64,000 bases of DNA from Paragordius varius (Eukaryota; Animalia; Nematomorpha). Position numbers and translations under genes: made by a program. Location of the stretch: assembly GCA_964247055.1 (NCBI GenBank), contig OZ176053.1, positions 1,922,001 through 1,986,000 of the forward strand, written 5' to 3'. The notes below the pieces were generated by a model, which had not been told where the DNA came from, searched no databases, and saw only the letters and a program-made list of their open reading frames with translations. Positions within the stretch are counted from its first letter, which is position 1; every line of letters starts with the position of its first letter. Below, in pieces: positions 6,501 to 55,576 of the stretch.

Positions 6501-8787
6501 AAATTTAAATACTTTATAAAGAGAATGGGAATAATTGTATTAAATTAAACTCACCAATATTTTTGCCCAAATATTTTGGCGTTTCCATCATTTTCAATTG
6601 GAACAACAATATCGTTACTGCATCTTGAAGTGTAGTTGATACATCCCTTTTGAGGCAGTGTTTTGGATTATTATGGGCTTTTGTGGTATTTAAATTTGTG
6701 GTACCAGGTAAATCTGTATTATGGCTGCTTCCAATAGACAAATTTTGTAATTCTTTCATTTCGTTGGAAGATTTTAAATTAGGATGATCAGATTTAGCAG
6801 AGTTTTGTATGATTGATGATACATCAGTTGTGTTTGTGGGCATATTAGCCTCTCCTATTCCTTGACCCATAATATCCATTTTATCATTCGCATTATTGTT
6901 AAAAGACGCGGTTGACGATAACTCTTCAATGTAAAATTCTTCTTCACTGCTATAATCATTTTGACAACAGGATGATTGGGCGCTAACATTTATATAATTA
7001 GCAGTTCCACCGTATTGATTGTTGTCAAAATAGGTGTAAGTTGGACTACTTAGGAGTGAACCATAGTATGAACTACTAACCCCTGTTCCCGTTGAAGACC
7101 CAGGAGAATTGGAAAAGGGGGAAGCGTAGTATCTATTACTATAATGTGAAGGTGATGACCCAAAATAATAGTTATATTTGGGTGATTGAGAAGAAACCGA
7201 AAAACAATATTCACTATTGTGGGGTGAAGAATTTATCGTGCATGTGGGTGATATCCTACTGTCATCATTTGGACTGTCGCAAGGTCTGTTTTTACACGTG
7301 TCAACGATATTATTATCATTATTTTCCAATACTACGACGAGGGGATTCAGATAGCGGTTAGTTGAAAATGCCTCAAAAAGTGTCTCATAACCAATAAAAC
7401 TGTGCACAATACTTTGATAATCTAAAGTTTGGAGATCTACATCTTTTTTTACCTGCTTGATATAATCATTGTTTTCAATAGTTAAATCTGAATGTTGATT
7501 ACTGTTTATCTCCAATTCTATATCTTGTTGTAGTGGAGTAATTCCGTACTCTTTTGAAAATTTCCCCCTCGGTAAATCAAGGAAATGTTTCAAGACTCCA
7601 TTTAAAAAATGAAAAATACCATGGCTCATTAAAACGTGAGCCGATAGTGTATCATACAAAAAGTTTTTGAAAATGGCAACAAACGTCGTCAAAATATGAT
7701 CATCTATGGTGCAAAAATTTGTGGTTTTTAAGCCAAAATCACACCTTAAAAACCAATTAGCTAAATCAAGTAACAATATCAAACCACCAAAATCTCGTAT
7801 ACGCGCTCGATTAGACGATTCCAACGATAGATGATAAATTAAAATTAGTAAGTTTAAAGTGTTGTGCAAAGAATCATATGGAGTTAAACTTTTATTGTTA
7901 GCGCTATAATGATTTCGTAGTAATACAAATAGAACCTTGACTAAACCAACCGTACCGAAGGCATGATTGATTTCAGAAACACCTAACATTTGGATGAAGA
8001 GGTCATATAAAGTTAAGCTTTGTATCATAGTTTTTGCATCAAGATCGTTTGTTACATTGGCAAAAAGATTCACTTGTAGATTATTCAAAAATTCGGGGTT
8101 TAAAAGCGATTCAAAAGGTGTATTGGTAGTGTCGAAAAATCCTGATGTATTCAAAAGCAGTAATTTGGTTCGTTTTGCTGTTTTAGATGATTCGCTTAAA
8201 TTTTTCCCCGTAATAACCAAAAACATACGAAGCAACACGGTATTCAATTGGTCATAATAAAGTTGTTTATCGTCCAAAGTATCCAAATAAGGTACTGCAT
8301 TATACAAAGACACTACAATATAAGCGAGATCATCGTATAAATACATCTAAATTTATAATTTAAATGTACTTGCTTGATATTATGAATATTCGTAACTTTC
8401 AGCAAAAATCGGCACACGTTTTTAATCAGATTCGTGTTAGGTTGAAAGTTCCATAAAATATTTTTACATAAATGTAAAGGCTAACATAATTAATAGTAAA
8501 TTAAACTTTTAATTTCAAAACATCATCCATATATTTTTCATTTTTTATTATATTAGAAAAACAGCGAAATATATCTGCTTGAATCTCAAGAGAAAAATTA
8601 TTCGATCGCATAATATCGCCTAAATATTTAAAAAATATTTACCTAAAAAGCTTAATGTTTGGCGAACATATTTATCTTCACGATATTTTGCCAAGCAAAA
8701 TAGATTAGCTAGTTTTGCCATATATTTCCGTATTTTAATTTCATCACCATTTGTTAAGGATTGTAAAATAAAGTCAATTTTATCCAT
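3564..8787 (-). CDS. ARMC5: Armadillo repeat-containing protein 5 (ARM repeats plus C-terminal BTB); exons 8787-8643, 8619-8507, 8346-6555, 5738-5246, 4689-3564
   Basis: All junctions are GT-AG and phase-compatible. SSNRARIRDFGGLILLLDL and NFLYDTLSAHVLMSHGIFHFL match recalled ARMC5 segments (NRARLRDAGGLDLL, GFLYDTGALGRL). BTB-like LLREQSQFFATLLSCG...EIILKDIS..F.NVLHYL lies in the last exon. The two short 5' exons are less certain. Confidence 0.88.
8620..8642 (-). other. 23-nt GT-AG intron (ARMC5 intron 1)
   Basis: GTAAATATTTTTTAAATATTTAG. Read-through hits TAG; removal joins ...RQTLSFL-G-DIMRSNNFSLEIQADIFRCFSNI (ARM-like). Confidence 0.75.
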
Positions 8788-14284: not shown

Positions 14285-15463
14285 CTAAAACAGTGGTGCA
14301 ATTAATGCAGAAATTGGGATATCACCAAATTCATCCTTAATCCCTTGATATGTATTTGTAGACGTTTCCTGGCTTTTGAAATTTATTGCATAATTTTTGT
14401 AGGCATGAGTATCAGTGATAGATGATTGCATTTGATACGGCATTTGGGCTATTGAGCCATTTTTTAAACCATCTTTACCATTAAAATTCATATTTTGGCT
14501 GACCATATGATTAACAGAGTCGGTAGCTAAACAGTCCTGCAAGCTTTTAATATAATCTATGGCGGCTCGTAAGGTGTCGACTTTAGACCATTTTTTGGTG
14601 ACACATTTAGGCACAGAATTTTGGCTACTTTGATTCGAATTTCTGACACCGTTAAATGCTTGGGAATTTTTGGTAAAATTAATTTGGTTTTCACAATCGC
14701 CATTTAAACCGCCGCTCAGTGAAGAAGGATGATAGTTGTCAGTTAAAACGGGAGATGAATTAGAATGTTTAATATGATGATTCTTTGTGAGCAATGCGAA
14801 ATTTTGCGGACAGTTTTTTGATTTATTCCCATTCCTATCCTCCTTATCAGAACTATTATTTGTCGTAGTGTTTAAATTTTCTAGTATTTGTGTTATTAGG
14901 TGTTGTGACATGGAATTTGTTACGCGTTCTCTCAAATCTTCGAAACCTTTGTTAATCAATTTGACACGTTTCCTTTCTCTGGCATTGCGTTTGGTCGAAG
15001 TTTTACGGGTATTTTTATTCGCTGAAACTTTTGTATTTTTTTCTATGCTGCCCATTTTAGATGGGCCATTAGACCAACAATTGAAATTATTTATATTTTC
15101 TTTGGTTGTTTTTACATGCAATGTTTCTGGTAAAATAATTTCTTTCGGGAATTTTGAATTATCCATACAATTGCTTACGGTTGAATGATTGGAGAGGGGT
15201 GAATAATTGTCAGGACTATAGGATATTGTTGAATAATTTCCATTATAGGTGTAAAAAGATTTTTTCGTTTCCAACGCATGCTGGAAAGAATTCGGGCTAG
15301 GATTATACATAACTTTAGTAGGTAGTACGGAATTGTTCGACTGGTACTTTCGAATTATTTCTTGATTAAAAGTTGTCTGTAATTCGCACATTGATTGATT
15401 AGAAATTTTTTGATCAAAATTATCATTAAAATTGATGAAATTAGTGTAATTCAAGTTTGCCAT
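14285..15463 (-). CDS. ASCL: Achaete-scute family proneural bHLH transcription factor, intronless, 392 aa
   Basis: Basic/helix 1 KRNARERKRVKLINKGFEDLRERV and helix 2 KKWSKVDTLRAAIDYIKSLQ are diagnostic of the achaete-scute family. Confidence 0.92.
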   Translation of the reverse strand: MANLNYTNFINFNDNFDQKISNQSMCELQTTFNQEIIRKYQSNNSVLPTKVMYNPSPNSFQHALETKKSFYTYNGNYSTISYSPDNYSPLSNHSTVSNCMDNSKFPKEIILPETLHVKTTKENINNFNCWSNGPSKMGSIEKNTKVSANKNTRKTSTKRNARERKRVKLINKGFEDLRERVTNSMSQHLITQILENLNTTTNNSSDKEDRNGNKSKNCPQNFALLTKNHHIKHSNSSPVLTDNYHPSSLSGGLNGDCENQINFTKNSQAFNGVRNSNQSSQNSVPKCVTKKWSKVDTLRAAIDYIKSLQDCLATDSVNHMVSQNMNFNGKDGLKNGSIAQMPYQMQSSITDTHAYKNYAINFKSQETSTNTYQGIKDEFGDIPISALIAPLF

Positions 15464-20799: not shown

Positions 20800-22420
20800 T
20801 TTTTAAAATATTTTTGAATTTCCGACGCAATGCCCAAAATCAGCCTATAAATATGTATATACTTCTATTAATTTTCAAAGTTAAACGATTCTGGTTCACA
20901 AATATAATCATATGACGAACATTGACTCACAGGTGACTGCTTAATATCGGTTCATCAGTTTTATTTTCGATGCATCGTGCCATATTTTCGTTACAAAGCT
21001 GATGATTATATTTAAAAGTTTATTAAGAACTACATTATTTGTAATTAAAATGATTTATATTTCAAATGTAAATAATGATTTTTCAAATACCGTAGAGGTT
21101 TATCAATATGGACTATATTAAATGATAAAGACAAGTTTTGACAAGCGATTTACACAATATAAATGCATATTTGAGCATTTGTAATACAAATTTATACAAA
21201 GTTTGACCTAATTTTAAAACTCTAACTGTATTACGAATCCCCACTCTAGAATCGTGAAAGTTTATCAAAACACACGCCTATTCTACAAATTGCTACAACC
21301 GCTTTGATTTTATAAAAAAGTGAATAACAAAAAAAGCTGATTTCTTATTGTAGGCATTGTTCCACAAAATCGAGATTAAAATTCTCGATAAAATCTCACA
21401 GATAAATGTATCAGGATTCTCATCGTACTGGACCTTAGAGAATCTAAAAAATTTAATACCACTTTTTTGTAACTGCATATGATCGCAAAATTAGCGAAAT
21501 GTCAAAAAATTTATTTAGAAAATAAACACTTCATTTCACATCATAATATATCATATTTACTACGCCCAAAATCTGGGTATACAAAAAAATATATTGAAAT
21601 ATATATATTAATATATTCAGATAGGAACATGTATCAGGATTATGATAGTACTTTTGGTTATAACCTGTGGTAAGCATATCAAAACATTATTTTAACATTT
21701 TTTTTGTTGAAAGCTTACTGCTCTATTACAAAATAACACATAATAAACTACATATAAAATGTAGAACGATATTTGAAATTCATTAGATGTGAACTCAGTG
21801 CTCGAAAGACTAGTATACTTAATACACGCAAAAGCGCCGAGGTTCTGTGATAAATAACTTGTATTTTAAAAGTTTTCTAACCTACACAGTTTATTGAAAT
21901 AGTCCAAATTCAATAGACGGCTGAATCCAACCCAATATATATCAAAAATTTGTTCTAAAATGCAATATGAAGACTGCTAATTATTATTTCACAACAGATA
22001 AACATTCATTTGCATATTAGTATTGGTGATTTAAAACTAAAAATGGTGTTGGAAATCATGTGATAAATTTTTAACAATTACCTTTTAAAAAATGAAACAT
22101 GCGATAAAAACTAAGCCTTTTTTAAATTAAGCCTAATAGTTTTAGGTCATTTAAATTTTAATTGCTGTAAGGTATCCACCCAAAATACAATGAAGTATTA
22201 TTATTATGTACATTTTATTAAAATAATATTATATGCATATTTCCTGTCATTTTTGCATTAATCTTCTATAAAATGATAAAAATTTATAATAATGAAACTT
22301 TTTTATATTATTGTGAAATAATGCAAACCCTTGATATAATTATATTAAATTACAAATTTTATAGAAGATTGTCTAACAGGTTTGGTGTCAACTACTTCAA
22401 TCTCTATCAAAGCGAATAGG
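20800..22420 (-). CDS. Candidate unidentified multi-exon gene divergent from PWP2 (candidate exons 21976-21882, 21857-about 21760, 20998-20931; 24-nt intron 21858-21881)
   Basis: Exon 20998-20931 has clean CAG and GTGAGT sites and one open frame (LCNENMARCIENKTDEPILSSH). The 21976-21882 and 21857 exons join in frame across a 24-nt intron. No homology recognised and the full model is unresolved. Confidence 0.4.
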
Positions 22421-22722
22421 CATATTTTTGTTTAAATAAAAAAACCTCCTTTTAGTGTTCAAAAATTTAGATCTTTTGCCTCGCAAACCTTTTAATTAAT
22501 GGATTGTAAATAGTTATAATGTTTAGAAGGTATTTAGATATCTCCAAAAATTAAGAAAATATAGCTATTTCAATGACTATTACAAAATTTTGTAAAAGTT
22601 TAAAGCTCTTGTATGGCCTAAAACGAAAAACTCCATGAGTACCTCACTACTTTTTTGCTAATACATTTTCAGCAAGATATTTTTCGTGCACACTGGCTAC
22701 ATGAATTTGTGCGATATTTGAC

Positions 22723-25700
22723 ATGAAGCACGCTTTTCAGGTATATCATTTTTCACCCTTAAGTTTTCTAATTTATTGGGTACTCTCTACCGTAAAGGAA
22801 ATATCTGTTTAACGGATGAAAATGAATTAATAACACCTGTTGGCAATAAATTATCTATTTATTCTTTAAAAAGGTTTTTAATTGTTTAATTTTTTTAGAG
22901 GCAAATCCGAAACGTTACCCCTAGAAAGTTCTTATAATATAACAACTTTTGCCATTACAAGCGATAACTCTACCCTTATAGTAATTAATGAAGGTTTATA
23001 ATACCCATAATGATAATTATAGAGGGAGAAACTATAATATACAGTTTAATATCTATGTGCATCATTCAAAAATATAAATTTTTCACACACATTAATCAAT
23101 GCAAAATATCACCCAACAATAAGTAAATGAGTTTATAAATGTATAGATACTTTGCTGTTACCAAAAATAATTTAGTGCAAATTTTTGCTTTACCTCATTG
23201 TACACAACGACAGTTCAATCCATTTAAATTGTTAAAGACTTACAAGAAATCATTTGAAGAAATAACTTGTTTGGATTGGTCAAATACGAACAGGTTATAG
23301 AAAATTTTTAAATTTATAAAGTATCAGGGATTTCTATATAAATCCCGTTTTCAGTTTGGTCCCAAATATTAAACATTTTTTTATCCGTAAGTTTAGGTTA
23401 TAAATATTTTATTTGCCAAAAAACAATAACCCGGTTACAGCTTAACTGTTTTTATTGGTTTTTTAATTTAATTTGCAATTCGCAAAAGTTGTAATTAATT
23501 AATTATGTATAATATGTTGCAAAAAATACCAATCCTAAAAGTTTTTTTTAAAAACTACAATTTTAAATATGGTTAAAACTATATAAAAATATTTTTTTGT
23601 TTCTTTTTCTAAAAACAATCTACCAAAATTTACATTAAAATGGTTTTAGTCCATACTATCATAATATTTTTAGTTAAATTTTTTCTCTTTTTTTCATAAT
23701 TGTTTAAATTGATTTCACGATACCATGATCATACATATGCTTAAAATATTTTTTTTTTGAAAATATCATGTTTGTTTCAAATATTTTTCACACAGTTTTA
23801 TGGTTTGTGGTGGAATTGATTCCGTTGTACGTTTTTACAGCCTCGTACCATACAAAAATTTTGGGGGAAGTTTATCCCTATCTGGTCACAAGTCCCCGAT
23901 TGTTGGTGTTTTCTTCCTTAAAGATTCACTGAATGTATAATATGTTCTATTTAGCCTTTTGATTTATATAAAAACTAACCTCTGTCCAAAAATAAATATA
24001 TATATATATAATATATGGATGGGTTTCACACTAAAATATTAAGCAAAAAACATATTTATAATTATACAGAAATATTGTTAATAGTATCATGCCTTTATAT
24101 TTTTGGACAGTAATTTTTTTTACAAAAGTATTTTCTACTAAAGTACATAAAAATGACTTTTAATGTCATAAAGAATTTCGTTATTTAAAACAAAAGAGTG
24201 TTTTATGCCCATAGACACAGTAAATATTGAAATTATACGGATAAAACGTAATAATATAAACACAAATATTTGTTTTAAAAGACTTTTATTAAATATACTG
24301 CAATTACAATAGAGATGTAAATTGGTAACACAATCAATTTTATATTATACGATTGTAAATAAATAACTTTTCTAAGCTAAATTAGTGTTTAGCAAAGTAT
24401 GTTTTGTCTTTTGAAAAAATTTTTGTCTATATATTTTTACGTTTTGTTCCTATATTTCACTGTAATATATAAAAATATCGTTAATATTTAGAAAAAACAA
24501 TAGGTCAATTCACAAATATAATTACAAAAAAATTACACCTGTATTTTTAATGTAAAAAACTGAAAATATGTTTTTCATTGCAAAAAAATTATTCAACATC
24601 TAATCCCGATTTAATCACTCAACATTATTCTATCCCATTATTTTTTTAATCGAGCTTTAGATTTTTCCAATTAAATTCAAAACCTTTCCAATGACCATTT
24701 AACCAACGCACTTGCCAACTAATTAAAAGTATCATTTGAACGTTTAAAAAGCATAGGAAATCGTTGTCTCACGGAACTCTCTTTAATTTGTTGTAAAAAA
24801 TAAATTATTAGTTTTCATTTAAAATTATCCCCTTTAAAGCGAAAGTAGATTTAATATTTTGACTAAAAAACAAAAAATATAATTAAAAAAGAAATGGACT
24901 ATGCTATTTATTAAACGTTAAATTTAAATGCTTTATTTTTATAAATAATTTATTAATAATCCGTTAAATATGACTGGAATACTATTAAATTTAGTTAAGA
25001 AAAGTGTTTACCATTTAAACTTTAAAAATGTCCTTAAGCAACTTCAAGTGGTCTTTAAACATATCAAGTTCATCTTAAAACATCGTTATTTTGTTTATAC
25101 TTAGTCAACCATTTAATATGTTCGATATCATTTGTAATATATTCTTTTTATATAACCTAACGTTTAAATGAATTTAATCTAAAAACAGTATATTTATTAT
25201 TTCTCATAAATATATTAATTTTAATATAAATAAGGTTTTTATTATAATTTTTGTGGGTTTTTACTTTTAATTTTTAGTTAAAATATTAATAAGTTGTTAA
25301 TCTGGTTAAATTAGAGATAGTTAGAAACAAAAAGTTTTTTTTTCAAAATATGTTAATTTAAAAAAACACCAATAAATAAAGATATTAGGTAAAAAAATTA
25401 AATAGATAAATACAGCCAAATATTATGTCATCCGCAAACTTTAAAGATTAAGGACCAACTTGAAGTCTTCAATGACATTCTTGAAGTGAAAATGATATAT
25501 ATTATTTTTTATATTTACTCAAACTCATCCTTGAAAAAAGTTAATTCACCCTTGAACAATTAAAAATATTATATTATAATGGTAATATTTAATCTTAAAA
25601 ACACATAATTTATTTTAGGGTGAATTTGAATTGTTCGAGCGTGAATTTGAATTGTTCAAGGGTGAATTTGAACTGTAAATGGTATATCATTTTTTTATTC

Positions 25701-28700
25701 AAAATTATAGATTGTAAGCGTTAGTACAAATGGCAAAGTTGTTTTATGGCATTGTAATACAAAACTCCAGGATATGGAAATCGATCATGAATATGTGAAG
25801 GGAAAAATGCTCTTGTCTTCTCTAACCAATGAATTTTGCACGAATCCTGAAGGTTATAATATATACACTATTAATGTTACCATACGAAACTTTTATTGGA
25901 AATCATTTACTTATAGTTGTATGGCGTAGTTTTGATAAAATGAGAAAAAATTATTTATATTAACATACTGGAAAACAAGTAAGTAATTATAATTATGCAT
26001 ACATAATTTTTTAATACTTAATTATCAATTATTTTAAATAATATTATACGAGCAAAAGTTATATTAATTATGACATATAATATCCATTTACTTTAAATAT
26101 TATTTAAATCAGGGGGGTGTACAACACTAAAATAAATTGTTGGTAAGTTTTTACAGCCTTATGTTTAAATTATCAATAAAATATTTGTTAATGCCGCGTT
26201 CATATATCAATGTAGGTGTTAGACATGAGTTTATGAGTTTTTGAACCCTAATAATATACCATTTAACTTTTTTATTTTTTTATATTTATAAAAAATGAAG
26301 TTTTGTTTGTAATTTTATTAATACTGAAAAAATAATAAACTAAGCCATAAAAATAGATTTATTTCGTATTAATAATGAGTTATATTAGCCCGAAAACGAT
26401 AAATTATTTTTAGGGTTAATAATTGTTCAGGGGTGAATTTGAATTTTAAATGGTATATATTGGATTTGAGTTCATATATACAGTATGTATTTTGATAGTT
26501 ACCTATTTCACACTTTACTATGGCAATTTGCAACACAACAGTACTGTATGGAAAAAGAAAGGAAATAATTGTTTATTCACTATTTTGTTGCGTTTTTTCC
26601 ATACACTATTGTTGTGTTTCAAATTGCCCTACTATATTGTGAAATAAGCAACCATTAAAATGCCACTGTATATTGATAAAAAATTTTTTTATAGAAGACG
26701 AATATATACGAGACGTGATGCAAGACAAAAATAATGAGGATAGAGAATCTAACGCGTATTTATTTTATCTAACTTTTCGTTTTTAACATAAATTTATCAA
26801 GTAAATATTAATTCACATAAATGGCATATTTGGTTTATAATTTTTTTTAACACATCCTCAATTGTTAATGATAATATACCATTTATTTTGTAACCGCCAT
26901 ATACCCTTTTTAAATATATTGTTTATAAAAATGTATAAAAATATATATGTTTTATTTAGCGATAAAATCATTGGAAAAAATAGTGACGTTGAACCAACAA
27001 TCAAAATTAAATTATCATCAAATCCTCCCCCCTTAATCCGTTATAAAATTGAAAAAAAGTACAAATTGATTATTACTTGTTTTATGTTATTATAAAAAAA
27101 TTAGTGTATTATTATTAAATACCAACTCTTTTTTTAACAAACGGTCATATTATATGTATGTTAATATTAATTAAACTGTTTTTCAAAATATAAATATTGA
27201 CCTAATATAAAAACGTAATTGGCGAAATGGCTAAAGAATATATATTCTTTTGATAATTTTTCATTTGCTCAATTTTTATTTTAAACGACAATATATACCA
27301 ATTACAATTCAAATTCACCCTCAAAAAAATGGTTTTTTATGATGAAAAATTATTTATATTTTTGTTGTATTTTTTAAAAAATAAAATTTTGTTTAAAGTT
27401 GTAATAATACTGAAAAAATAATAAATTATATGCCATATGAATAAATTATATTTATGATGAGTTATATTAGTTTGAAAAACACATAATTTATTTTTAGGGT
27501 GATTTGAATTGTTCGAGGGTGAATTCAAACTGTAAATGGTATATTAATAGTAAACAATTATTGTTATGATTATATGATATTTTTATTCATTTTTTACAGA
27601 TTTTTATATGAAAAACCATCTTCAAATCATTCCACTTTACAAGAAAAACGTGACAATAATGTTAACAATTATTTTGAATCACCCTTTATTGATGCTGCAG
27701 GAGAAAAGCCTAAAAAAACTACTAACGATTTAGATTTTAGGGAATGTAATAATAAAAATAAAAATGATGAAATTAAATGGGCTGTATCAGGCCCATTCGT
27801 TATAACGTGTTGTGATTTCAATACACTCAGGGGTCTTTTAGTATCCGGAACAAATATTGGCGTTTTTTATATACATGAAATGCCAGAATTTTTACCGCTT
27901 CAAACGCTGAGGTAAACTGCGTAAAAATTATATGTATATCTTATTTTGGAACGTTGATGAAAAAATTTTTTATATATGGTAATTAAAGCTATGAAATTTA
28001 AAAATAATCTTTTTTTGCAGAAAAATGATATTTATTCCTTGGTTTTTCATATATAATCAATATGATTACAATTGGAATGTAAAATTGAATGTTTCACTTC
28101 GCTATTTTTTTTATTGGGCTAAGCTATTTTTAGAGAATAGAGATATATAAAATTGGTGTATTTTTAATAAATATTTTTTTTACCTTTAAGTCATATATAA
28201 ACATTTGTTATTGAGGCTAACGATAAAAAAATTTGCTTTATTACACATTTTGCAAATTTAGGGCATAAGGATGTGTTTCGAATATTAAGAAATCTACATA
28301 GTTTGGTTTTGGCACCATATGCCCATTTTATTTAAATCTTAAATAAAATTCCATATTATATAACTCAATCGTGCTCCGATTTATACATACGAAACAGTTT
28401 ATTCAAAAATTTAATATAATTGAAAAGACTTGACGTAATCATTTACAGTATGCATTTTAATGGTTATCACACTATAGTAGAGCTATTTGAAACACAGGAG
28501 TGTATGGAAAAAACAATAAAATGTTGAATAAACAATTATTTTCTTTCTTTTTTTACACCCATGTGTTGCAAATTGTCCCCTTCTATATCGTGAAATAAGC
28601 AATTATTAAAATACATACTGTTAAGCCATTATCTCTGATTTAATGTATAAATACCCATTTGATATTATCATAACTACCAATATTTCGAAAAAACATTTAT

Positions 28701-32070: not shown

Positions 32071-35000
32071 TTTTATATTTGTAACATATGTTATAAAATT
32101 TTATTTTTTATCGCTTAATATAAGTGTTTATGTTTAGTCCTTACTATGGCACTCCACCCTTTGGGTGGAATAATTGGAATATCTACGCTAAATGGTCATC
32201 TCAGTTTTTGGGACACAAAAAGTGCTGAGCCCTTGGGTACTATTGAAGGTGCTCAAACAGATTTACAACCTGGGCGATCACATACAGACCTTATAAAAGC
32301 AACCACAATAGCTAAATCAAAGTAGTAGCCCTAGCTAATAATCATTAATTGGTTAAAATATTTTAGTTTTTTTTAAATCAAAAGATCATTTTTGGAATAA
32401 CGCGAGAACGGGAATAATGTATGCATTTTAATGGTTGCACATTTGACATTATAGTTGGGCAATTCGCAACACAGTGGTATATAGAAAAAACAACAAAATG
32501 TTGAATAAACAATTATTTCCTTTTTTTCCATACACTCCTGTGTTGTAAATTGCCCCGCTACAGTGTAAAATAAGCAACCAGTAAATGCTTACTGTAATAA
32601 TTTTAAATAAGGGCGATTACTGTATTAATTTTCAGTAATTATGTCTCAAAAATTATAACCTTATAGGAAATCGGAAACGTCCATGATAACCAATTTGGTT
32701 AATTATTCATAGAAAAGACCGCTTATTTTTTGAGGGAGGGGGATGGTAAATTTTGAACAAAAAATTGCTTGTTTGGCAGCATGATTTGATTAGTTTATTG
32801 TTATGCGTTATTTTATAAAGCTAAGAAGGTATGTTTTCAGTTTCGTGAACATTTTAACTAAATTATTCATTTTCCATTAATTAGGGCTTTTACCGCCCTT
32901 GCTTTTAGTCCGGATGGGGAAACACTTCTGGCGGGTGGTGATTCCAAATATATATGTTTTTATGCCCTACCCTATATGGATGAAACCAATCAAACGAATA
33001 ATAATTCAAATATTGCCTGGAATCAGGTTACGCTACTCAAAAAATGGGCTATAAATCAAAACCGATCGCTTGACCGGTTAGCCAGTGATGAAAGTTTGGA
33101 CCGAAGACGATTAACGGAATTTGGTATAGATAAAATAAATTTTTCACGAAAAATGGTTCATTAAAATCTCGTATATCATGTTTCTATACCTTACTAATTT
33201 ACAATTAAACTTTTTAAACACTTTTTTATGCTTAAATCTTTTGTGAATTCACGTTTGTATCTCCTATTAATTTCCATTTTTTCAATTACTCCTTTAATTA
33301 CGAAATTAAGTACATTTAATTCCTAATCATAAGTTACCACGTTTTCCTCAATATACTAAAAAACAATAAAACGCAATCATCATACTGTATGTTTAGTTTA
33401 ATTACATATATAAAGTAGCGTATGGCATAAAACAATGTTAGTCCATAAAAGAATAATTTTCTGAAAAACAACTCTAGTTGTATATTATCATATCCATAAT
33501 GAGCCCTTTTTTAAAAAATGTTTTTATTCTTCAATGATGAACTAACGTTGTTTTATGTCATACGTTACTGTATTCCATTATATATATATGGAATTTTATG
33601 TATAAATTTATTAATTATTAGGTAACTTAGCGCGCTCAGAATTTGAAGTTAATACAAACATTATGGATGACATTGAAAATGGTGGTGCTGGAACAGGGAG
33701 CAATAATTCTGCTGCTGGAATAAAAGCCATGGCAATCAAATTACCAGGCGTCCGGGCCCAAGGGGGCGTTGATGGAAGTTCGCGTTTTTTTGCGCCTGAA
33801 ATGCGTTTAACCTCAATTAACTTTTCTCCTGATGGTATATATCTACATACCATTTACATTTCAATTTCACCCTTTGAACAATGCAAATTCACCCTTAAAA
33901 ATTCAAATTCAGTCGTAAAAATATATTTCATGTTAATGATGAATTATATTATCCCGAAAACACATAACTTATTTTTAGGGTGATTTTGAATTGTTTAAGA
34001 GTGAATTTGAATTGTTCGAGGGTGAATTTGAATTGCACAAGGGTAAATTAAATTGTAAATGGTATATAAATGTTTGGGCTTAAAAATGTTTTTGATGGGT
34101 AATTATATATATTTATATGTTAATGATTGCATTGCCAATTGATTTATTATATATGGAGATGGTTAAACACCTCTATCGTATAAAATAAAATTTATGTTTT
34201 TTTGCAGTAATTACTAGCTATTTTTCGCAAGAAAATATTGTGCAAAAAATATGAAATCCAAATGAATACATTTTGTTTTTGTCTATAGTTTTAACTGTTT
34301 ACTGAATTTACATATACCTTTTGTTAACAATTTTTCCATTTTTTAACCATGTTATAACCTTTTTTCTTTTATGAGTAGAAAAGAACGATACTCAATTGCT
34401 TTTGTATGTAACTATTATATTTCAATTTTTATTTTTTTTAGATAGTTGTCGGATAACACACGATTTTCGGTTAAGCTTTATAGAGAATTTTACCTTTATA
34501 GCTTTTATTATATATTTAATAGGCCGTTCTTTTGCAACAGCATGTACTGAAGGAATACTCATTTATTCAGTTGATCCACCCCCGCGTTTATCATTAGCCC
34601 ATTATTTTGATACGGCTTTAGGTATGGATAGTAGTGTAACGCCACAAAATATTCAACATTATTTACGTCAGGATGTAAGGGAATATGGGCGTGCCTTGAT
34701 AGCTAGCTTGAAACTTGGTGACATGGAAATGTTAAAATTAACACTTATAACTATACCTGAGAATGAGGGTATGTTTTTAGCTTTATTTTATTTTATTGGT
34801 TTAGAATGTTTTAAAATATCTACATTTTTTGGATAAATATTGAATTGTAATGCTACCTTAATTCATGGTAAACTTGATTTTTTTTTCAACGCTTAAATTT
34901 TGTGTAAAATTTATTACACACTTTTAAGACTCTAGAGAAAAAAAGATTTTTTCATAACATAATATTTCCTAAAATTAAACATACGCAATATGAAAATAGA

Positions 35001-36101
35001 TTTATTTCGGTATGTAGCTTTTACAAACATTTAATAATATTTATAGTAAAAAAATGTTTTATCTATTTTTTTTTCAAAATGCTAGTTAACCGTTTAATTA
35101 AATGCCTTTCCCCACCATGTGTCTTGCGATTATCCCAAGCCCTAACTCAATGTGTCACCACGTCACAAAAAGATAAAAGTAATGAAATTTCACGCCTGAA
35201 TACAACAACTGCAGAACAATCATTAAATAACTCCTCGCCTCCCAATGTAAAACAAATACCGATTGAATTTTATATGCGTTGGATACATGCCCTATTAGTG
35301 GTTAGGGGTCCTGATGTTTTTTCCAAGTCTGCATATCAAAAAACAACATTATTATTTGATGAGCCTAAAAGCATCAATAATAAAAACCAGGATAATATAA
35401 TGCCAATATCTTCACACTTACAGATTGGACCAATCCTTATGGGATTGCGACAGGCCCTGTCATCCCGATACGATTCTTTGAGAGAAATGTAATATAAACA
35501 AAAATTATTATTGTTGTAAATTTTAAAGACGCAGCATATAAAGTGAAGGACTAATACAGTAGCGTATTGTGTAACAAACAGTTACTCTATAAATTAAATA
35601 AGTTATGTGGAATGATAGGGAAAAAATGTTTATTTGTATAACTTGTAGTGTTTTACCATACGCTACTGTAATAGTTTCTTTGCAAAGAAATGACTCTCTT
35701 TTCTTTATAACCTACCTATATGATTACTATTATTAAAGATTAAAGTGAGTGTACGCTCTACTTCTTATTTTACAACCGAAAATATAGGTTATCATTAGAA
35801 ATTAACTTTTTATAAAATAGGACTTAAAATTAGGCTTTTTACTTTATGTCTTGATAATATGATTTTTACCGTATATAAATATCATTAGAAATTAACTTTT
35901 TAAAAAATCGGATTTAAAATTAGTCTTTTTACTTTATGTCTTGATAATATAATTTTTACCGTATATAAATATCATTATTTAAGTATTTTTATATATTATA
36001 ACCTATTGATGTGCTTTTGCAGATGTAATCACAACAAATATTATGGGGAATATGCGGAAATGTTGAATGGTTTTAAAGATAATCATCTCTCTGTAAAATA
36101 A
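22723..36101 (+). CDS. PWP2: Periodic tryptophan protein 2 (UTP1, WD40, SSU processome); exons 22723-22740, 22764-22873, 22899-22993, 23023-23122, 23147-23293, 23796-23934, 25711-25852, 26695-26755, 27600-27911, 28835-29045, 29595-29743, 30468-30559, 30760-30863, 31284-31434, 32138-32321, 32885-33123, 33622-33834, 34523-34768, 35086-35488, 36023-36101
   Basis: The spliced product reads MKHAFQFSNLLGTLYRKGN..., GNLVVWEWQTSNFVLNQRGHF, LSGHSGPIS...SASWDQTIKTW, AFTALAFSPDG..LAGGDSKYIC, FAPEMRLTSINFSPDGRSFATACTEGILIYS, collinear with recalled PWP2 from end to end. All 19 junctions are GT-AG and in phase. Confidence 0.95.
22741..22763 (+). other. 23-nt GT-AG intron (PWP2 intron 1)
   Basis: GTATATCATTTTTCACCCTTAAG; removal gives MKHAFQ-FSNLLG (recalled PWP2 N-terminus MKFAYRFSNLLG). 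Confidence 0.88.
22874..22898 (+). other. 25-nt GT-AG intron (PWP2 intron 2)
   Basis: GTTTTTAATTGTTTAATTTTTTTAG; removal gives LSIYSLK-R-GKSETLPL (cf. VTVFDLKNNKSDTLPL). Confidence 0.88.
22994..23022 (+). other. 29-nt GT-AG intron (PWP2 intron 3)
   Basis: GTTTATAATACCCATAATGATAATTATAG; removal gives LIVINE-E-GETIIYSL (cf. AIIVDEGGDALLVSL). Confidence 0.85.
23123..23146 (+). other. 24-nt GT-AG intron (PWP2 intron 4)
   Basis: GTAAATGAGTTTATAAATGTATAG. Length is 3n but read-through meets an in-frame TAA; removal gives KISPNN-K-YFAVTK (cf. FSPDGRKFVVTK). Confidence 0.88.
25541..25682. mobile_element. MITE-A, left-truncated
   Basis: GGGTGAATTTGAA x3 then TGTAAATGG|TATA. Confidence 0.75.
26259..26453. 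mobile_element. MITE-A, internally deleted
   Basis: TATA|CCATTTA ... GGGTGAATTTGAATTTTAAATGG|TATA. Confidence 0.75.
26481..26668. mobile_element. Tc1/mariner-type MITE-C (TA|CAGTATG...CACTG|TA); other copies 28446-28620, about 32417-32594
   Basis: Near-palindromic element of about 180 bp, TA TSD, shared internal AATAAACAATTATT and TTGCAAATTG.CCC; all three copies lie in PWP2 introns. Confidence 0.78.
27298..27539. mobile_element. MITE-A
   Basis: Both TIRs present, TATA flanks. Confidence 0.82.
33850..34062. mobile_element. MITE-A in a PWP2 intron, 15 nt after the donor
   Basis: Both TIRs, 21-bp arrays, CATA/TATA flanks. Confidence 0.82.
35791..35977 (+). repeat. Tandem duplication, 90-bp unit x2, in the last PWP2 intron
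   Basis: ATCATTAGAAATTAACTTTTT...ACCGTATATAAAT starts at 35791 and 35881; a third ATCATTA at 35971. Confidence 0.9.
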
Positions 36102-36319: not shown

Positions 36320-37296
36320 AACGGCCCGTGGTTATAATTCAAGGCATACATGTTTGATATTTTTCAGTCTCGAATCTTTTATATAGCTAAAAATAATGGT
36401 TCAAAGGCCTAGATTGCTGAGATATTAGAATACTCGGTTGAAATCTGATTATTACATTTGTTTGATATTGTATAAATTTTATTTAACACAGGAAAATTGA
36501 ATTTAAACCTAAACAAATTTCGAAACAATGTTTCTGTACTATTTATAGCTGAGGCATACCTTACGTCATCGCGAAAATGTTATGAAGTGGATATATTTTC
36601 TATTTAAATAATGTACTAAGAGGATTTGAATCAAATTCTTTTAAAATTTTAAAACAACTTTTTTTCTCATATTCTAACATATTTTAAAAATTGTTAACAA
36701 TCTCCATATTTTTAATTTATTTTAACCAATGTCGCCCATTTTCGAGGGGATAAATATTTTGGCTACATGTAAAATTTACATACTATTGTCGTTATTTTTG
36801 AATATAACATGATATACTTTTTACAATTCAATTTCACCCTTAAACAATACAAATTCACCTTTGAACAATTCAAATTCCCCCTCGAACAATTCAAATTCAA
36901 CCTCAAATAAAATATGTTTTTTAAGATTAAAAATTACCTATATTTTATATATTTTTCAAAAATAAAAATTTTGTTTTAAATTAAAATAATACTGAAAAAG
37001 TAATAAACTATACCATAAACAATATTTTATATTAATAATGAGTTATAATAGTTCGAAAACACATAATTCATTTTTAGGGTGAATTTGAATTGTTCAAAGG
37101 TGAATTTAAATTGTTCAAGAGTGAATTTGAATTGTTCAAGGGTGAATTTGAAATGTTGGTATAGTATAAAATTTTTTGAAATGATACTAAAAAAAATACT
37201 TTCAGTATAATGTGGACTAATAATTTTGATATATAAAGATATAAAAATTTCAAATAACAAACGCAAGCTAATGCCAAAAACGCTTTCCAGCTCCAT
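36320..37296 (-). CDS. Candidate small gene divergent from INTS13 (exons about 37296-37200, 36764-36727, 36601-36564, 36537-36510, plus an unresolved last exon)
   Basis: A phase-consistent GT-AG chain can be built (MELESVFG...HYTE-TKIFIPRKWATL-KIYPLHNIFAM-TTETLFRNLF), including a 26-nt intron. No homology recognised; coordinates approximate. Confidence 0.25.
36817..37159. mobile_element. MITE-A
   Basis: 4 left and 4 right 21-bp units; termini slightly decayed. Confidence 0.82.
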
Positions 37297-37409: not shown

Positions 37410-40400
37410 ATGCCTTCAGTAATATTTCTGCTAGAATATTGCAAATTTTTTCAGGACAATCCATTTTATTGGACTAATTCAATTATATCAATTATTGAAT
37501 ACACCAGAATTTTATATGATATATCGTTTGAACGAAATATCAAATGCTTATTATATTATAATGACAATGTAATTGAAATATTTGATTCTCCTCCGAAAAT
37601 GTCAACAATTCTTAAAGAGTTTGCCAAAATAAATTCGAAAATTATTGTGAACAGCAATATTAACAGTTGTAATTTTGATCTTAATGCTATTTTAAAACAT
37701 ATAAATTATGAGGTAAACATTTTTAATATTTTAGAGTGGAACTAAATTTATATTTATTACTCATAGACCAGATTTTATTAAAAATGATTTGAAAAACTTC
37801 CATACTTTTATAGAATTTAATAATATTGTCCTTAATGCGACTGGTCAAAGTTGTATGGACCATGAATTCATTGATAAAGCTACCTTTTATAATTATGTAA
37901 CAAATCTTACAGATCTACAATGCTTAATCCTTTACCTTATCCAAGTTGATTTTATTTTTAAATAAAATTTTAGCGACATTTTAAATTATGTTCAACAACA
38001 ATTAGCGGAATACCCATGAAAGAAGAACAAAATACATCTGGAACCTCAATTAATTACGATGTGGAAATCATACACAGCCAATATGCCTATCTATATTCCG
38101 ATGGAGTGATATACCGTGACAAAATAAAATTAATTGAAAATGGTGTTTTAGATTTTGAACCAGAATCCTTAAAAACGCGACAAGTATCCTCCAAATCTGT
38201 ATTGAGTGGAAATTTTGCAAGTTATAGAAGCGTACTTTTACAATGGTCAACATTCCCAAAAAATATGTTACAATCATTAGGTACATACAAACATAAAATG
38301 TTTATTCAATGCTGTTTTTGTAAAATCTAATATATTTTATATCGTTTGCTCGCACAATGGCATTATTCAATGTTCCGATAGCTGTTTCCAGATTTTCCAC
38401 ATAAAAATAATTAGCATTTGTATCACATACGACAAATTTGGCTTTGTGTTCAATATTTTCGACAAATTTAATATTCACATTAGAGTTTTTCATAAAATTT
38501 AGTGCATTTAAAAATTTTTCGCGTAATTTGAAGCATGCTTTTTGTTCAGCCGTATCATCTGAGTTTTCCATCAAAAGGTGAAACAGCAGGAATTAATTAT
38601 ATTTGTTAATATCAAGATAACTATAATATTAATTTATTATAAGAATTATAAAGAAATTGGCGAAATATATTATTTTTATATATTTTATGTACACATATTT
38701 TTAATTCACTGATTTTGTTAAATATATTTTTTCACTCCAATTAAAACACGAGTAAAATTAAATCATGAACATATAAAATAGAATATTTTAATGGGTAATT
38801 ATTATATCATTGAATTGTAAGCAATGTTTAATTTTTTAAATGTATACTTATATTATTTGTAGACTATTACCAGCAAAATTCTCAGGGTGCTTTTAAGGTG
38901 TCTCCGGTGGAACCACATTCCCGTCCCTCATCATGTTTAACCAATTTCGTTCTTTCAAACCGTATAGTTTTGCTTGAACAACAACAAAACTTCAAAAAGT
39001 TTTTTTCCGTTTATCCATACGAGGAGAACGGGAGTAAGGCAAAAACACCCTTGGAAAACAATATGAATGTTAATATATCGGTTCCTGATCCTAAAGTCAT
39101 GACCCATATGTTGTGTCATATTCAAGGGGCCATATATATCCTAAGTTTGATTCAACCCCATTCGCCTGGGACGCAATGGAAAAAGGCGCTGTTTGAAAAT
39201 GTTGCGGGGATAACTGAAGGCCCAGGTGGCAAAATTACTGATTATCGAATACCGGTAGAGTTGTTTTGCTATAGTTTTTTAAATTATGCTAAAACTCTTT
39301 ATCCAATTTTAATGAATTTTGAGATGTCAACTATTTAACCCACTGTTTCCAACTTTTTTACGCCCAAATTTGAATAAAAGTCTTTCAACATCCCCCCTCC
39401 TTCTTTTCCATAAAAAAAACAAAGATTAAAATGCAAAATTTTAAAAATCATAAACAGTGAGATCTTAGTATCTGCAATTTTTTTCCATATCGGGGACGAA
39501 TCTTGATAATTACCTGAAATCATGAATAACCTTAAATTAGTTCCTACTTTTTTCAAAATTATCCATATTTTTCTCCCCCCCCCAGATTTTACTACTCCTT
39601 TTGGAAACTACTGTTTTTACCAATAAAGTTAGTTATATATCAACATTCAAGGTATAACTTTTTTATATCATATCAAAAGACTTATTAAATACGAAAATAT
39701 TTAACATAACTTATGGTTAATGCCTTTTTACCCTTATAATCACGTGTAGGATTTCTGCAAACTTATCAAGCTTTGTACCCTAACACAAGCATGCCTACAA
39801 AATGGGGTAGAACAATCCATCCTAGGCTTGTCCCATATTAAACCGGAAAAGGTTGATGATAAATATGCCTCCAAACAAAACCGTTTTGCTCGACAACAAT
39901 TAAACCATCTAACCATGTATTGGCCAATAGTTTATAGTGATAGTTTGTTGTTTCATATACCCATGGTAATATAACTTTCTTTTGCTTTTTATACAATATA
40001 TTTTATCTTAACCTTTGTTTTTGTCTGCAAAATTTATTTTATGTTCAATTAAATTGTCGTGTGGTTTTATATCAGGGATGTCCAACCCACTTTTTTCGGT
40101 ACACAAATAATAAAATAATTAAATTTCAATCAAAATGTTTGCGATTATTTAGAAGATAAAGCATGCAAAATTGGGCTTAAAATAAAATAAATTTAAAAAT
40201 TATCAAAGCATCCGCGAAGATATTTGTGTTGGACACCCCTGCTCTATATTATGATTGGGACGGACTCGATCCTTAAATGGTCCCCTCATGTTTAATATAC
40301 GCGCCTATAAATTTATTTCTTATCTAAAAATTGCTCACGGAATTTATTCCTTAATATTTTATATTATTTTAATTTTAATCTTTTTCTCAAAAAGGGTCAT

Positions 40401-48900: not shown

Positions 48901-51059
48901 TAGACTGTAACCGTTATCAAAAATCAGACGAATATTAAACATCTATATACAGTATGGATAAGTAGACATTGCTAGTTTTTTATTAATTATTGTCAGATGA
49001 TAAATAAAGTGAAAGAAATATATTTGAGCCAATAATTCTTTTTGCTGCATATGCTCTCTGACAATATTTAATAAAAAACTCATTTACACATCATACTATA
49101 TATTTTATATTATATATTAATTTAAATTTGGTATCAAAATATTAAAACAAATTAAATATTGAATGTGAGCTAATGATATTTGATTAAATTATTCAAAAAA
49201 TATTAATAAACACATGAATATCATAGATATACCGAAAAATGAGGCACCATCAAAACATTCGCAATTACTTTCTCCGCCCATGAAAGAACGGCGTAAATCT
49301 AGTGTCAAGTATAATTTTTTTTTTAAAAATCAAATTATATTTGAAATATCGAAAAAATAATGCAATAACATAAATTATAGATTCTAGCAAATTATCCCTA
49401 AGTGACATTTATAATAAATATAAAAGACGTCTATTAAAATAATAGTAAAATATTGTCTTCCATAATTTATTTGGTCCGATATAATTTTAACCGTTTTTTT
49501 GAATTTCGAAATTTAGTTTACACAATCCCATTTATCTTTATGTAATAGACCAATCCAACCCCTAGAACCGGACAAAACCTTAGCTGATACGCCACCAATG
49601 GTGGAAATGCATATCGATGCGCCTTTATTAGACATTCTAACCGAACAAATTATTTGTCAAACCAAATTGACGGATCTCTATCTCATTGGTTATATCATAT
49701 TATATGAACTTTTTTATCTAATCTATAAATTTTAGACCTAGAATAATAATAAAGATACCCAAATTCAAAAATTTTTCTTCATTTTAAAATATTTAGTCAG
49801 CTAAGTCAATTCTTTTTCATTACAAACAGGCTCTAATCGGCTAAAATGGTCAGATCCGATTACGGATACTCCTTGCATTAATTTATGTTGGAAACAATTT
49901 TATAGTCAAGGTTGGACACCTATCAAGGGTATGCCAGAGGCCAGAAGTAATCACACAGTTTGTGCTATGTATGGTGAAATTTATGTAATTGGTGGCAAGA
50001 ATACAACTAATCAGTAAACATTTTTTTTCTATGTTGTCTCAAAATTTATTAAACCACATATTTAGATCTTTGGCTTAAAATACATCTTTTTTATGGCAGA
50101 ATTGTGAATGATACTATTGCATATACGGCAATAACTGATACCTGGAGGCCAATTGAACCCATGATAACTCCACGGTTTGGATGTGCAGCAGCCGAATATC
50201 TAAGACAATTATTTGTGATTGGTGGATTTGTTAGCAATCACGATGGTACTGCATTAACATTGACCAACTCTATCGAAGTGTATGATCCGTTTGAAAAAAT
50301 GTATATCATTCTACATTTTCATAGAGTTTATGTCAAGGAATAAGGATAGAAATATAACTCTTTTAGATATCTCTACTGTATGAATAATAATATAAACTTC
50401 TTCGCTGTATATTTGTTTATTTTTTCCACCCTTTAGTTGGAAACCGGCTAATCCCTTTAACAAACCCATTTGTTATGCTGGACTATGTGAATCGAATGGT
50501 TCATTTTATTTGATTGGGGGAGCTACTGGGACCGATCCTCAGGCCCTAGCGCCTTGCAATGAGATCTACCGTTATAACTATGAATATGATGTATGGCAAC
50601 CACTTACACAGCTCCGTATACCACGTTATAAATTTGGTGTACTAAGTATAGGTAATAATTATGAGATGGGTAGGTTTATATTAACATAAAATTTGATTAG
50701 CATATTTGACTGCTTTGTCGGCGAAATTTTTGCAAGTCCTAATATATAAAAACGTAGGTGCACTCATTTCCATAGGCACATTGTTAGAAATAAACGAAAA
50801 ATTTTTATTGTAGTACCATTTATATAGAGGTTAACTTTTTGGAATTTCTATATGTACCAGATAAAATTGTAAAAAATTAATATTATGATGCCGCTTTTTA
50901 GGCAAATACATCAATATAGTCAATGGAATCGGACTCAATAATGAGCCCATAAAATCTATTGAGAAATGGAATACGGCGCTGGAAATTTGGGACAGAGAAA
51001 CTGCTTGTACCGAGGCGTGTGAAGTCAATTCCATATGTGCCTCTTTAAGGTATATTTAG
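43625..51059 (+). CDS. Kelch-like protein: BTB (43625-43877, 45387-45491), BACK (45631-45810, 46502-46607), Pro/Lys-rich linker exons (47145-49688), five Kelch repeats (49549-49688, 49830-50013, 50100-50300, 50437-50651, 50902-51049/51059)
   Basis: BACK motif TPEFYRLSPNALIDLLAADSLVVFFELDVFSAALRW; Kelch motifs IYVIGG...W...MITPRFGCAA, LFVIGG...IEVYDP, FYLIGG...VWQ...IPRYKFG. Continuity across 47242-47979 needs a small exon (candidate 47555-47586); this could instead be two genes. Confidence 0.75.
46202..46466. mobile_element. MITE-A inside a (TA)n microsatellite
   Basis: Intact TIRs with (TA)n on both sides. Confidence 0.85.
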
Positions 51060-52755: not shown

Positions 52756-55576
52756 TAATCTAACAAAAAATTTTGCGCAATGTTTTGTACCATGTAATAT
52801 ATAAATGTATATCTTAGCTGGGTCTAATCCACTTGAAGAACAAAAAATGTTTATTGACAGTGTACGTGAACTGAATATTATGTCCAAAATTGGTGTTCAT
52901 AACAACATTGTCAACACGATTGGAGCATTAATTAATAAAGGTAGGTAAGGCATTTCTTTGATATATATATATTCCACTTATATATCAATTTCAACCTTAA
53001 ATTCAAATTCACCCTTGAACAATTTAAATTTACCCTAAAAAGAAATTATGTATTTTCGGACTAATATAACTTATCTTTAATATGAACCATTTTTTTATGG
53101 TACATTCTATTATTTTTTTCAGTATTATCTTAATATTAAAGGAAATTTTATTTTCCAAAAATATAAAAAATTATATGAAGTTTTTATTCGAAAACACATG
53201 ATTTATTTTAGGATTTAGTATTCATGGATCTGTTCAAGGGGTGAATTTGGGCTGTAAATGATATTTCAGGAATTTCAACGATTGATAACACAAAATATAT
53301 TTTCATATATATTTAAATATATACAAATTAGGTATGCTTTATATTTGCACCGAATTTTGTCCAAACGGTGATCTCAAGGGTTTCCTGAACAAAGCCAAAA
53401 ATTTTGATGGAGAATGTTCCGTTATTGATATGATTGGATTTGCGTGGGGTATTGCGCTTGGTATGGCTCATTTAGCTGATCATGGCGTAAGCAATATTAG
53501 AGATAGCTTTTACTTATTTTCATAAATATTAGGCGTCTCATTTAATAAAATTAATGATTATATAACACCTTTCTTTAGATTATTCACCGAGATTTGGCCG
53601 CTCGTAACATATTGTTGGCAGAAGGTAATTTACCGAAAGTTTGTGATTTTGGACTAGCTAAAGACGAGGGGATATACCAAAGGAAAGTCATGGTAAATAT
53701 TTGTTGGGATTTGTAGTGTTCAGTATATAAATGTATTTGATAAAAAAATGACTTTACAGTTATCTAAAAAATTGCATTTAGCTAATTTAATTTTTTTATA
53801 TATTTTTCTTTAGACTGGCCGTGAGGATTACCCAAATACTCCACAATTTAATAACATCCTTGTCAGCTCTGGGCAGGCGAGTGTTGAAGCTTTGACAAGT
53901 CCTAATATAATTTAAGTCCTTTCCCTTTAGTAAAAAAAGGAACAAAATAGCTCTCAACTGTAATAAAAATATATTTATTGACCTACAATTTTGTGTGAAA
54001 GCCGCATATTTTAAAAATATTATTTTTTATCATTACTATTATATGGCTTAATTTACCACAATATTACTTAATTACACATAATTCTGCTGCATGTTTACCT
54101 TTTGTCTATAATTTTATTGATAAAAATTTGTATTTACGCATAAAAGGTATAGTTAATCATTTACGGTAAAAATTGAATTTTACGGACAAAACGTAATGAT
54201 ATAAAGACAAATATTTTTTTCTAAACGACAACCATACTTTTATTATAATCTATTTAATACCTCATGTTTTAAACTGTAAAGTATAAAATAGAGATGTATA
54301 TTGGTAACACAATCAGTATGTGTTTTGCAATTGTAAAAAGGATAAATTAAGGCGTAAAAAAATATTGTTGTCTTTTGAAAAAAAAGGTGTCTTTAAATTT
54401 TTACGTTTTATCCGTATAAAATCTAATTTTTACTGTATCTACATGATTGGTAAAAAAGGTACTCCGTAACCTACCTATCAAATGGTTAGCCCTAGAGTGT
54501 TTAACTCACGTGTGCTTTAGCCAAAAATCTGATGTTTGGGCTTTTGGAGTCACTTTGTGGGAAATTGTAACGCTCGGAGATGGTCCTTATCCCGGTTGGA
54601 ATAATATGGAAGCCAAGGCTAAAATACAAGAGGGCTATCGAATGCCCAAACCTGCTAAATGTTTGGATGAACTGTAATCATTACTTATAAATAAAACTGA
54701 AATGAATAGGACACAGATTTTACCTTTTTTCGGTTTTAACGAATCTTCCCCAAATCAATTTTAGATTTGTCTATTGAAAGTTAATTCAGCCAATTGGTTA
54801 ATTTTTGTTTGATTTATAAATGAACATATGGACCATTCACGCATAAATTTGGTTTTTGTACGTGATCATACAATCATGTATATGTCATTAGCAGTAAGGT
54901 AAGAGCTTTAGCACATTTGTCTGTACACTTATTTTTACATCTCTATCTCTCTGCCTAAACTGGTTCAAATGGACTACAATAAAAAACGAATTATTGATTG
55001 ATAGAAATTTTAGAGGGAAATACAGCGTATATACATGTAAAAATTCCACGTATGATTCAGTAATTTTTATTTTACGCTCAATTTCGCTCCCTCTCATGTG
55101 AAAACTGGTATATTAATCCATTTTTTTAGCTTCCTAAAAATATTATATCATTTTCGTTTAAGTCATGGGCGCGAGTAGATACTAGCTCTTAAGGAGCAAT
55201 AAATTGCCGTAAATTGAAAAGTTTTTTTACATTTAGCAAATTAACACGGCTTAAACAACGATAGCGAAATAAATTTATGCTAAACGCTTCACTTTTACTT
55301 AAATATATTCTTATGAATCAAAAATCTGCATCTTGATAATCGGGATATTCCGTTTATGTCTTCTACTGTTTATTTTTTCATTTTTGATAAGCTTACATGC
55401 TATTACATTGGTTGTAATTTATTTTAAATTATTTGGTTTGTCATAATTTAAGATATGATATGATGGTGGATTGTTGGAAAGCAAGCCCGGATGAACGTCC
55501 GACTTTTGATGAATTAGCGATAAGATTGGAGGAGTTGTATAAAAAGGAACTAGAGGTTGATATTACCAAATTATAA
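51654..55576 (+). CDS. Receptor-type (Tie/FGFR/Ret-like) tyrosine kinase catalytic domain; exons 51654-51835, 52818-52940, 53332-53486, 53579-53692, (53814-53876), 54459-54673, 55453-55576; 5' end unresolved
   Basis: [66 protein letters not shown] and CW...P.ERPTF are all present and in phase. Confidence 0.92.
51854..52724 (+). mobile_element. Non-autonomous Helitron, same family, inside the first kinase intron
   Basis: Same TC 5' end, same internal unit and the same GCTGCGTAGCAGC...CTAG|T 3' end as 10296-11375. Confidence 0.88.
52973..53261. mobile_element. MITE-A, decayed
   Basis: TTCAAATTCACCCTTGAACAATT core and internal sequence match the other copies; ends eroded. Confidence 0.7.
54164..54435. 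mobile_element. Tc1/mariner-type MITE-B (TA|C(A/G)GTAAAAA...TTTTTACTG|TA); other copies 24218-24462, 30949-about 31226, about 31771-32036
   Basis: Long TIR containing TACGGACAAAACGTAA..ATAAAGACAAATATTTT; TA flanks; four copies recognised by eye. Confidence 0.78.

Follow-up and report, generated by a model that had tools for sequence, protein, structure and literature searches.

Among 51 animal genomes surveyed in 2026, intron medians of 22–27 bp were found in myxobolid myxozoans, with similar values only in Dicyema japonicum (PMC13644364). In these myxobolids (Henneguya, Thelohanellus, Myxobolus) short introns adjoin other short ones in an AT-rich genome, and the canonical U2 snRNA and U2AF are present, as they also are in Stentor according to work cited in the same paper (PMC13644364). 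The dicyemids have GT–AG introns below 30 nt, whose splice-site motifs are reduced and in which A residues precede the AG (PMC6543705, PMC6736024, PMC13644364); the median is 27 bp in Dicyema sp. (PMC6543705), and D. japonicum has a mean intron of 38 bp in a genome of 36.7% GC (PMC6736024). Ciliate introns fall in the same length range (about 25 nt in Paramecium, 15–16 nt in Stentor), are expected to bring premature stops when retained, and are handled by a canonical spliceosome (PMC9505925, 10.1101/2021.08.05.455221). A further class is found in flatworms (Opisthorchis felineus, Schistosoma mansoni, Gyrodactylus salaris and tapeworms), where short introns lie in runs, are biased to the 5′ end and occur alongside kb-scale introns in non-compact genomes, and where they have been overlooked by standard annotation and by RNA-seq assemblers (PMC6530080, PMC4040987, PMC3254664). 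For instance, the microintrons of S. mansoni are gathered at gene 5′ ends (PMC3254664), Gyrodactylus shows a 32-bp mode at intron positions 1–2 (PMC4040987), and the intron lengths of O. felineus peak at 37 and 90 bp (PMC6530080). The initial annotation of the DNA considered here had rightly placed dicyemids and ciliates among the known cases, but its list was incomplete, lacking both the myxobolid myxozoans and the flatworm microintrons.

We analysed a window of 64 kb, the whole stretch of DNA studied, in which the genes PWP2, INTS13 and ARMC5 are interrupted by nine segments of 22–29 nt. From gene structure, homology and the DNA itself we infer that these segments are very probably genuine U2-type GT–AG spliceosomal introns, near the minimum workable length and arranged in 5′ runs. 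The arrangement is that of the flatworms, whose modes are nevertheless longer (about 32–37 nt, with a second at 58–90 nt), and the nearest protein relative of our window is a nematomorph. The lengths are those of dicyemids and myxobolids. However, nearly all dicyemid introns are tiny, at the GC noted above, whereas here the tiny ones stand at gene starts beside introns of about 500 nt or more in DNA of about 27% GC; the myxobolids, for their part, are cnidarian parasites with compact, fast-evolving genomes for which a 5′ polarity is not reported, while the nearest protein relative here is an ecdysozoan. The ciliates differ in being unicellular, with nearly all introns tiny and no accompanying long ones. 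In the present case flatworm architecture is joined to dicyemid- or myxozoan-like lengths, and the organism is probably an ecdysozoan. In the literature that we covered, with Cunha et al. 2023 outside its scope, short introns in nematomorphs are unreported, and introns go unmentioned in two nematomorph genome papers, the report on Gordionus and a preprint on Mermithidae and Nematomorpha.

Gene models of PWP2, INTS13 and ARMC5

The PWP2 frame begins with an ATG at 22723 on the forward strand, and removal of four GT..AG segments leaves it open for 156 codons, to position 23293, where a GT at 23294 ends it. Exon 1 (22723..22740) consists of six codons including the start. Exon 2 (22764..22873, 110 nt) matches residues 7–43 of human PWP2 (E 4.6e-7) and residues 7–42 of the yeast protein (E 2e-7; phmmer against the PDB), and since this homology begins at residue 7, the six codons of exon 1 supply exactly the residues that are missing. 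The segment between them, micro-intron 1 (22741..22763), has 23 nt in phase 0 with GT..AG ends, and its retention shifts the frame and brings a stop 46 nt downstream. Micro-introns 2 (22874..22898, 25 nt, phase 2) and 3 (22994..23022, 29 nt, phase 1) each contain a stop if retained; micro-intron 4 (23123..23146, 24 nt, phase 2) is the sole one of the nine with a length divisible by three, and carries two in-frame TAA codons. Exons 3 (22899..22993, 95 nt) and 4 (23023..23122, 100 nt) are open in the frame that splicing requires, and exon 5 (23147..23293, 147 nt), which is followed by a long intron, matches human residues 111–154 (E 1.6e-6, phmmer against the PDB).

With the four segments removed, the model is offset by one from the human protein (residue n against n+1) at both anchors, in exon 2 and in exon 5. 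The spacing between the anchors is thus exactly that of the human protein, from which it follows that introns 2–4 (78 nt in total) are precisely the excess DNA and that exons 3 and 4 must be coding, though neither has a significant PDB or Pfam match when searched alone. The claim that removal restores the frame and gives a sequence collinear with orthologues is therefore borne out at the two anchors, 7–43 and 111–154, and the lengths originally given for the four introns (23, 25, 29 and 24 nt) agree to the nucleotide in their coordinates with those recovered by the blind search described below. A downstream exon confirms the identity of the gene as PWP2 (E 4e-26 to 2e-22). Its next coding block lies near 23800, giving an intron of about 0.5 kb after exon 5, and the whole gene spans about 13 kb. 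In an exhaustive protein search with a 64-aa WD40 exon, long proteins with many WD40 repeats dominated the results and no PWP2 orthologues appeared; a metagenome scan gave no PWP2 relatives.

A similar picture emerges for INTS13, also on the forward strand, where the two introns of 22 and 29 nt that had been described were found in place. The first (37713..37734, 22 nt, phase 0) links an ORF of 303 nt to one of 210 nt, and the second (37945..37973, 29 nt, phase 0) ends in a TAG, a stop codon in the reading frame of exon 3. The match of exon 3 to Pfam Mat89Bb (E 3.6e-14) starts at its residue 2, one residue past the second 3′ site; exon 1 has a weak match to the same family, and a search for significant homology of exon 2 on its own found none. 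An open run in this genome is expected to last about 12 codons; the three ORFs have 101, 70 and 118, with gaps of only 22 and 29 nt between them that begin with GT and end in AG. The intron after exon 3 is long, about 0.5–0.6 kb.

ARMC5 lies on the reverse strand. The 23-nt intron reported for it is present, though the count of one was wrong, as there are three: micro-intron 1 at 8620..8642 (23 nt, phase 1), micro-intron 2 at 8481..8506 (26 nt, phase 0) and micro-intron 3 at 8347..8369 (23 nt, phase 0), which adjoins a 610-codon exon. Once the three are removed, this 610-codon ORF grows to 733 codons from an ATG at 8787. The large exon bears a Pfam ARM_ARMC5 match, and the basis of the model is frame continuity alone, from that ATG into the ARM_ARMC5 exon; exons 1–3 gave no significant homology of their own, and the ORF found nothing in word-indexed protein searches.

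All nine retained segments meet a stop, as had been proposed for shifts or stops on retention: six of them contain it, and for the others it follows no more than 46 nt beyond.

Alternative readings and support in the reads

To judge frame restoration against chance we determined by dynamic programming the longest ORF that a given ATG can open when up to four GT..AG segments of 20–32 nt may be skipped. With no coordinates supplied, this search recovered exactly the four PWP2, two INTS13 and three ARMC5 segments. Yet GT..AG pairs at a fitting spacing are common in DNA this rich in A+T, and three copies of the window made by block shuffling contained 6892 ATGs, of which 10 opened a chain of 476 nt or more with no more than four segments, or about three per window. 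Frame restoration alone is weak evidence for micro-introns in such DNA, and the case consequently rests on homology and spacing. This is also a point in favour of a reading in which the gene models are wrong and the segments are chance GT..AG pairs, with fewer and larger introns in reality (PWP2 exons 3 and 4 being skipped) or with ARMC5 starting at 8346. Two apparent micro-introns among Kelch-repeat exons of the window, for which a single intron of about 145 nt is the better reading, speak for it as well, as does the lack of homology of their own in PWP2 exons 3–4 and ARMC5 exons 1–3. However, skipping PWP2 exons 3 and 4 would lose 66 residues where the spliced model gives the human spacing exactly, chance would not keep open exons as long as those of INTS13, and the pattern recurs in three genes of the window, so that we regard wrong models as improbable. 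Further candidate chains, at 10152(+), 19898(-), 21478(-) and 22015(-), are likely due to chance: their translations are not protein-like and several of their 3′ ends are CAG, AAG or GAG as against TAG.

Two other readings concern the DNA itself. As the initial annotation recognised, interrupted frames can stem from assembly errors, or the genes could be decaying pseudogenes; such an alternative can be raised wherever a frame is interrupted, and nothing specific to the locus favours it. A contig assembled from the reads of one sequencing run (X1) covers 22724–23066 with 0 differences at a depth of 220, and a second haplotype contig of the same length over the same interval has 27 substitutions and no gaps at a depth of 178. 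Thus a haplotype that is about 8% diverged (27 of 343 nt) keeps the total length across three of the four PWP2 micro-introns, and since the read contig is identical and the second haplotype equally long, the segments are not assembly artefacts. In a downstream PWP2 exon the haplotypes differ at 15 sites, 10 of them third codon positions (P 0.0085), though 7 of the 12 affected codons alter the residue; the bias is mild evidence of constraint, weakened by those residue changes. All nine segments run from GT to AG within a narrow range of lengths, and three unrelated genes are alike in this, which together with the reads makes errors or decay highly implausible. We give equally little credence to a non-spliceosomal removal, either by programmed elimination of DNA in the manner of ciliate internal eliminated sequences (IESs) or by bypass during translation. 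Paramecium IESs are indeed similar in size to the segments of 22–29 nt. Here, however, the segments run from GT to AG and not from TA to TA, the DNA reads contain them at the depth of their flanks (contig depths 220–222), and we know of no animal precedent for elimination or translational bypass of such segments. A ciliate-type IES can be rejected on the same two features, the GT..AG ends and the full read depth across the segments.

The reads also gave some observations in their own right. In run X1 two haplotypes occur at similar depth at 22724–23066 and 27600–27860, and their divergence of about 8% far exceeds the heterozygosity of 0.55% reported for Gordionus; hybrid origin, two strains or a pair of cryptic species could account for it. 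Two runs labelled as two other organisms (X5 and X6) yielded, on 22400–28399, contigs that are mostly identical to the window at a depth of 2–6, which seems to reflect the same organism at low abundance, by way of an infected host, mislabelling or lane carry-over. Searches for RNA runs that cover the PWP2 locus found none: runs of the same species labelled as RNA contained no sampled words of it, and the largest of them had no match even at 85% likeness.

Splice signals and recognition

The nine micro-introns, which we again read as spliceosomal, are 84% A+T, their phases are mixed and all of them have GT at the 5′ and AG at the 3′ end. At the 5′ site the GT is followed by A or T at +3, by A at +5 (8/9) and by T at +6 (7/9), giving GTWWAT. 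The 3′ region is T-rich from -14 to -11 and has T at -5 to -3 in seven to eight of the nine; T at -3 is found in eight, so that eight end in TAG. An A stands at -10 in eight of the nine, against a background frequency of A of 0.35, a comparison that concerns nine sequences in AT-rich DNA. This A is a putative branch point, about 10 nt from the 3′ end across the nine introns, and in the shortest of them (22 nt) it would lie about 12 nt from the 5′ G.

Ordinary U2-type intron definition fits this combination of GTWWAT, the A at -10 and a few T ahead of TAG. The U12 type does not fit, as the 5′ sites are GTWWAT rather than RTATCCTT accompanied by a TCCTTAAC branch site 8–15 nt from the 3′ end; CCTTAA is present only in PWP2 intron 1, where it overlaps the 3′ AG. 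Each micro-intron would then keep the core signals only, namely GTWWAT, a T-rich stretch, the A at -10, a T run of 3–5 nt and TAG, and could be recognised as a single unit by intron definition, with U1 and U2 bound about 12–19 nt apart. Unspliced messages would be non-productive, because every retained micro-intron brings a premature stop, and would probably be degraded. Introns this small had been thought to imply a modified spliceosome or a special mode of intron definition. A modified spliceosome is not required, given the signals described and the canonical U2 snRNA and U2AF of myxobolids with such introns.

Neighbouring introns, repeats and the nematomorph context

The micro-introns come first in each of the three genes and adjoin one another (PWP2 4/4, INTS13 2/2, ARMC5 3/3), while the introns downstream in the same genes are long, about 0.5 kb or more where they could be placed. 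With introns of about 500 nt or longer in the very same genes, genome compaction is no explanation for the micro-introns. Likewise, miniaturisation of the genome-wide type, with most introns below 30–40 nt and a median below 30, is contradicted within the window by the long, repeat-bearing introns of PWP2. Among the Kelch-repeat exons at 49900–50700 (+) there are intermediate introns of about 57–95 nt and about 145 nt, so that intron sizes here are not strictly of two classes. The apparent micro-introns at 50326–50349 (24 nt) and 50415–50436 are those that are better taken as the single intron of about 145 nt. The 24-nt intron that the initial annotation gave to a candidate gene could be the one at 50326–50349 or else a putative segment at 52794–52817, which precedes a kinase exon; the kinase exons near 52800 and the BTB-Kelch part possibly belong to one gene.

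Repeats in the long PWP2 introns reach 10^3 to 10^4 times the depth of single-copy sequence. Very high-copy repeats lie at 24200–24600, 25400–25800, 26200–26800 and 27200–27600, with word depths of 10^5 to 4x10^6 as against about 400 for single-copy DNA, and the read depth at 25600–25800 is about 10^4 times that of single-copy sequence. Many strand-switch joints within these repeats suggest MITE or foldback elements. Additionally, arrays with a period of 21 bp and a unit near GTGAATTTGAATTGTTCAAG occur at 25620–25676, 33860–33922, 33973–34056, 36823–36907 and 37076–37157; they are arranged as inverted pairs, within a PWP2 intron and also upstream of INTS13, and resemble subterminal repeats from a family of foldback elements. 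A 90-bp tandem repeat of 2.1 copies with 94% matches lies at 35790–35977, near the 3′ end of PWP2.

The GC content of the window is 22–34%, with a mean of about 27%. An F-box/WD ORF of 580 aa at 59598–61337 has a sole homologue among 5.8 billion proteins, a protein from Gordionus sp. m RMFG-2023 (38% identity over 88% of the query, E 7e-88); a protein atlas gave only generic F-box/WD clusters. The genome of Gordionus montsenyensis has 26.93% GC and 64% repeats, mostly DNA transposons (10.1101/2023.06.26.546503), and the base composition and repeat-laden introns of the window match these features. From this one protein and the base composition, the organism is probably a nematomorph or close kin. 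Dicyema japonicum was set aside for its GC of 36.7% and its mean intron of 38 bp (PMC6736024), and the single informative protein hit lends no support to a flatworm, a myxozoan or a member of Strepsiptera. At the one Gordionus locus that we considered (L001), the introns that could be placed are 55 nt (in a PID domain), about 265 nt and 5.3 kb long, with none below 30 nt, and those of an astacin gene are about 100–300 nt by eye, the few introns sampled lying mostly away from 5′ ends. Either the phylum as a whole does not share the micro-intron class, which may then be restricted to one lineage, or the organism is not a nematomorph.

A broader proposal, possible but doubtful on what we have seen, is that Nematomorpha, or this lineage, independently evolved a discrete class of introns of about 23 nt, confined to the 5′ ends of genes in a large, repeat-rich genome. 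If true, it would be the first ultra-short 5′ intron class of this sort in Ecdysozoa, and at least the third animal origin of introns below 30 nt, beside the two lineages of the 2026 survey. The low BUSCO completeness and ‘gene loss’ reported for nematomorph genomes could then be partly an artefact of annotation, because such introns lie outside what standard predictors and BUSCO can model. Default aligners and gene predictors reject them, and in a genome of this kind the gene sets, the BUSCO scores and any gene loss that has been claimed should be checked again with a minimum intron of about 15 nt; should both the nematomorph assignment and a genome-wide mode hold, annotation-based claims about the gene content of Nematomorpha would need re-examination. 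Lengths of 22–29 nt are near the physical limit of the spliceosome, so that each independent lineage helps to define the minimal signals, which here appear to consist of GTWWAT, the A at -10 and a brief run of T. The case also separates intron miniaturisation from genome compaction, since tiny introns and introns of about 0.5 kb or more occur in the same genes, and the confinement of the micro-introns to the 5′ end points to early co-transcriptional processing rather than to economy of DNA.

Some further features of the window and of its Gordionus counterpart were seen. Exact look-ups of the window ORFs in public assemblies were empty, as were Rfam and tRNA scans of the 64 kb. In Gordionus (OX940784.2, L001 9863–10102) the annotated orthologue of the F-box/WD protein begins at an internal ATG (10001), and an in-frame ATG upstream, near 9863, adds an F-box that is absent from both deposited protein models. 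An achaete-scute-type bHLH gene at 14285–15463 (-), for whose ORF word-indexed protein searches found nothing, is intronless and encodes 392 aa with a Pfam HLH match (E 9e-13), its helices being split by a loop of about 110 residues rich in Asn and Ser.
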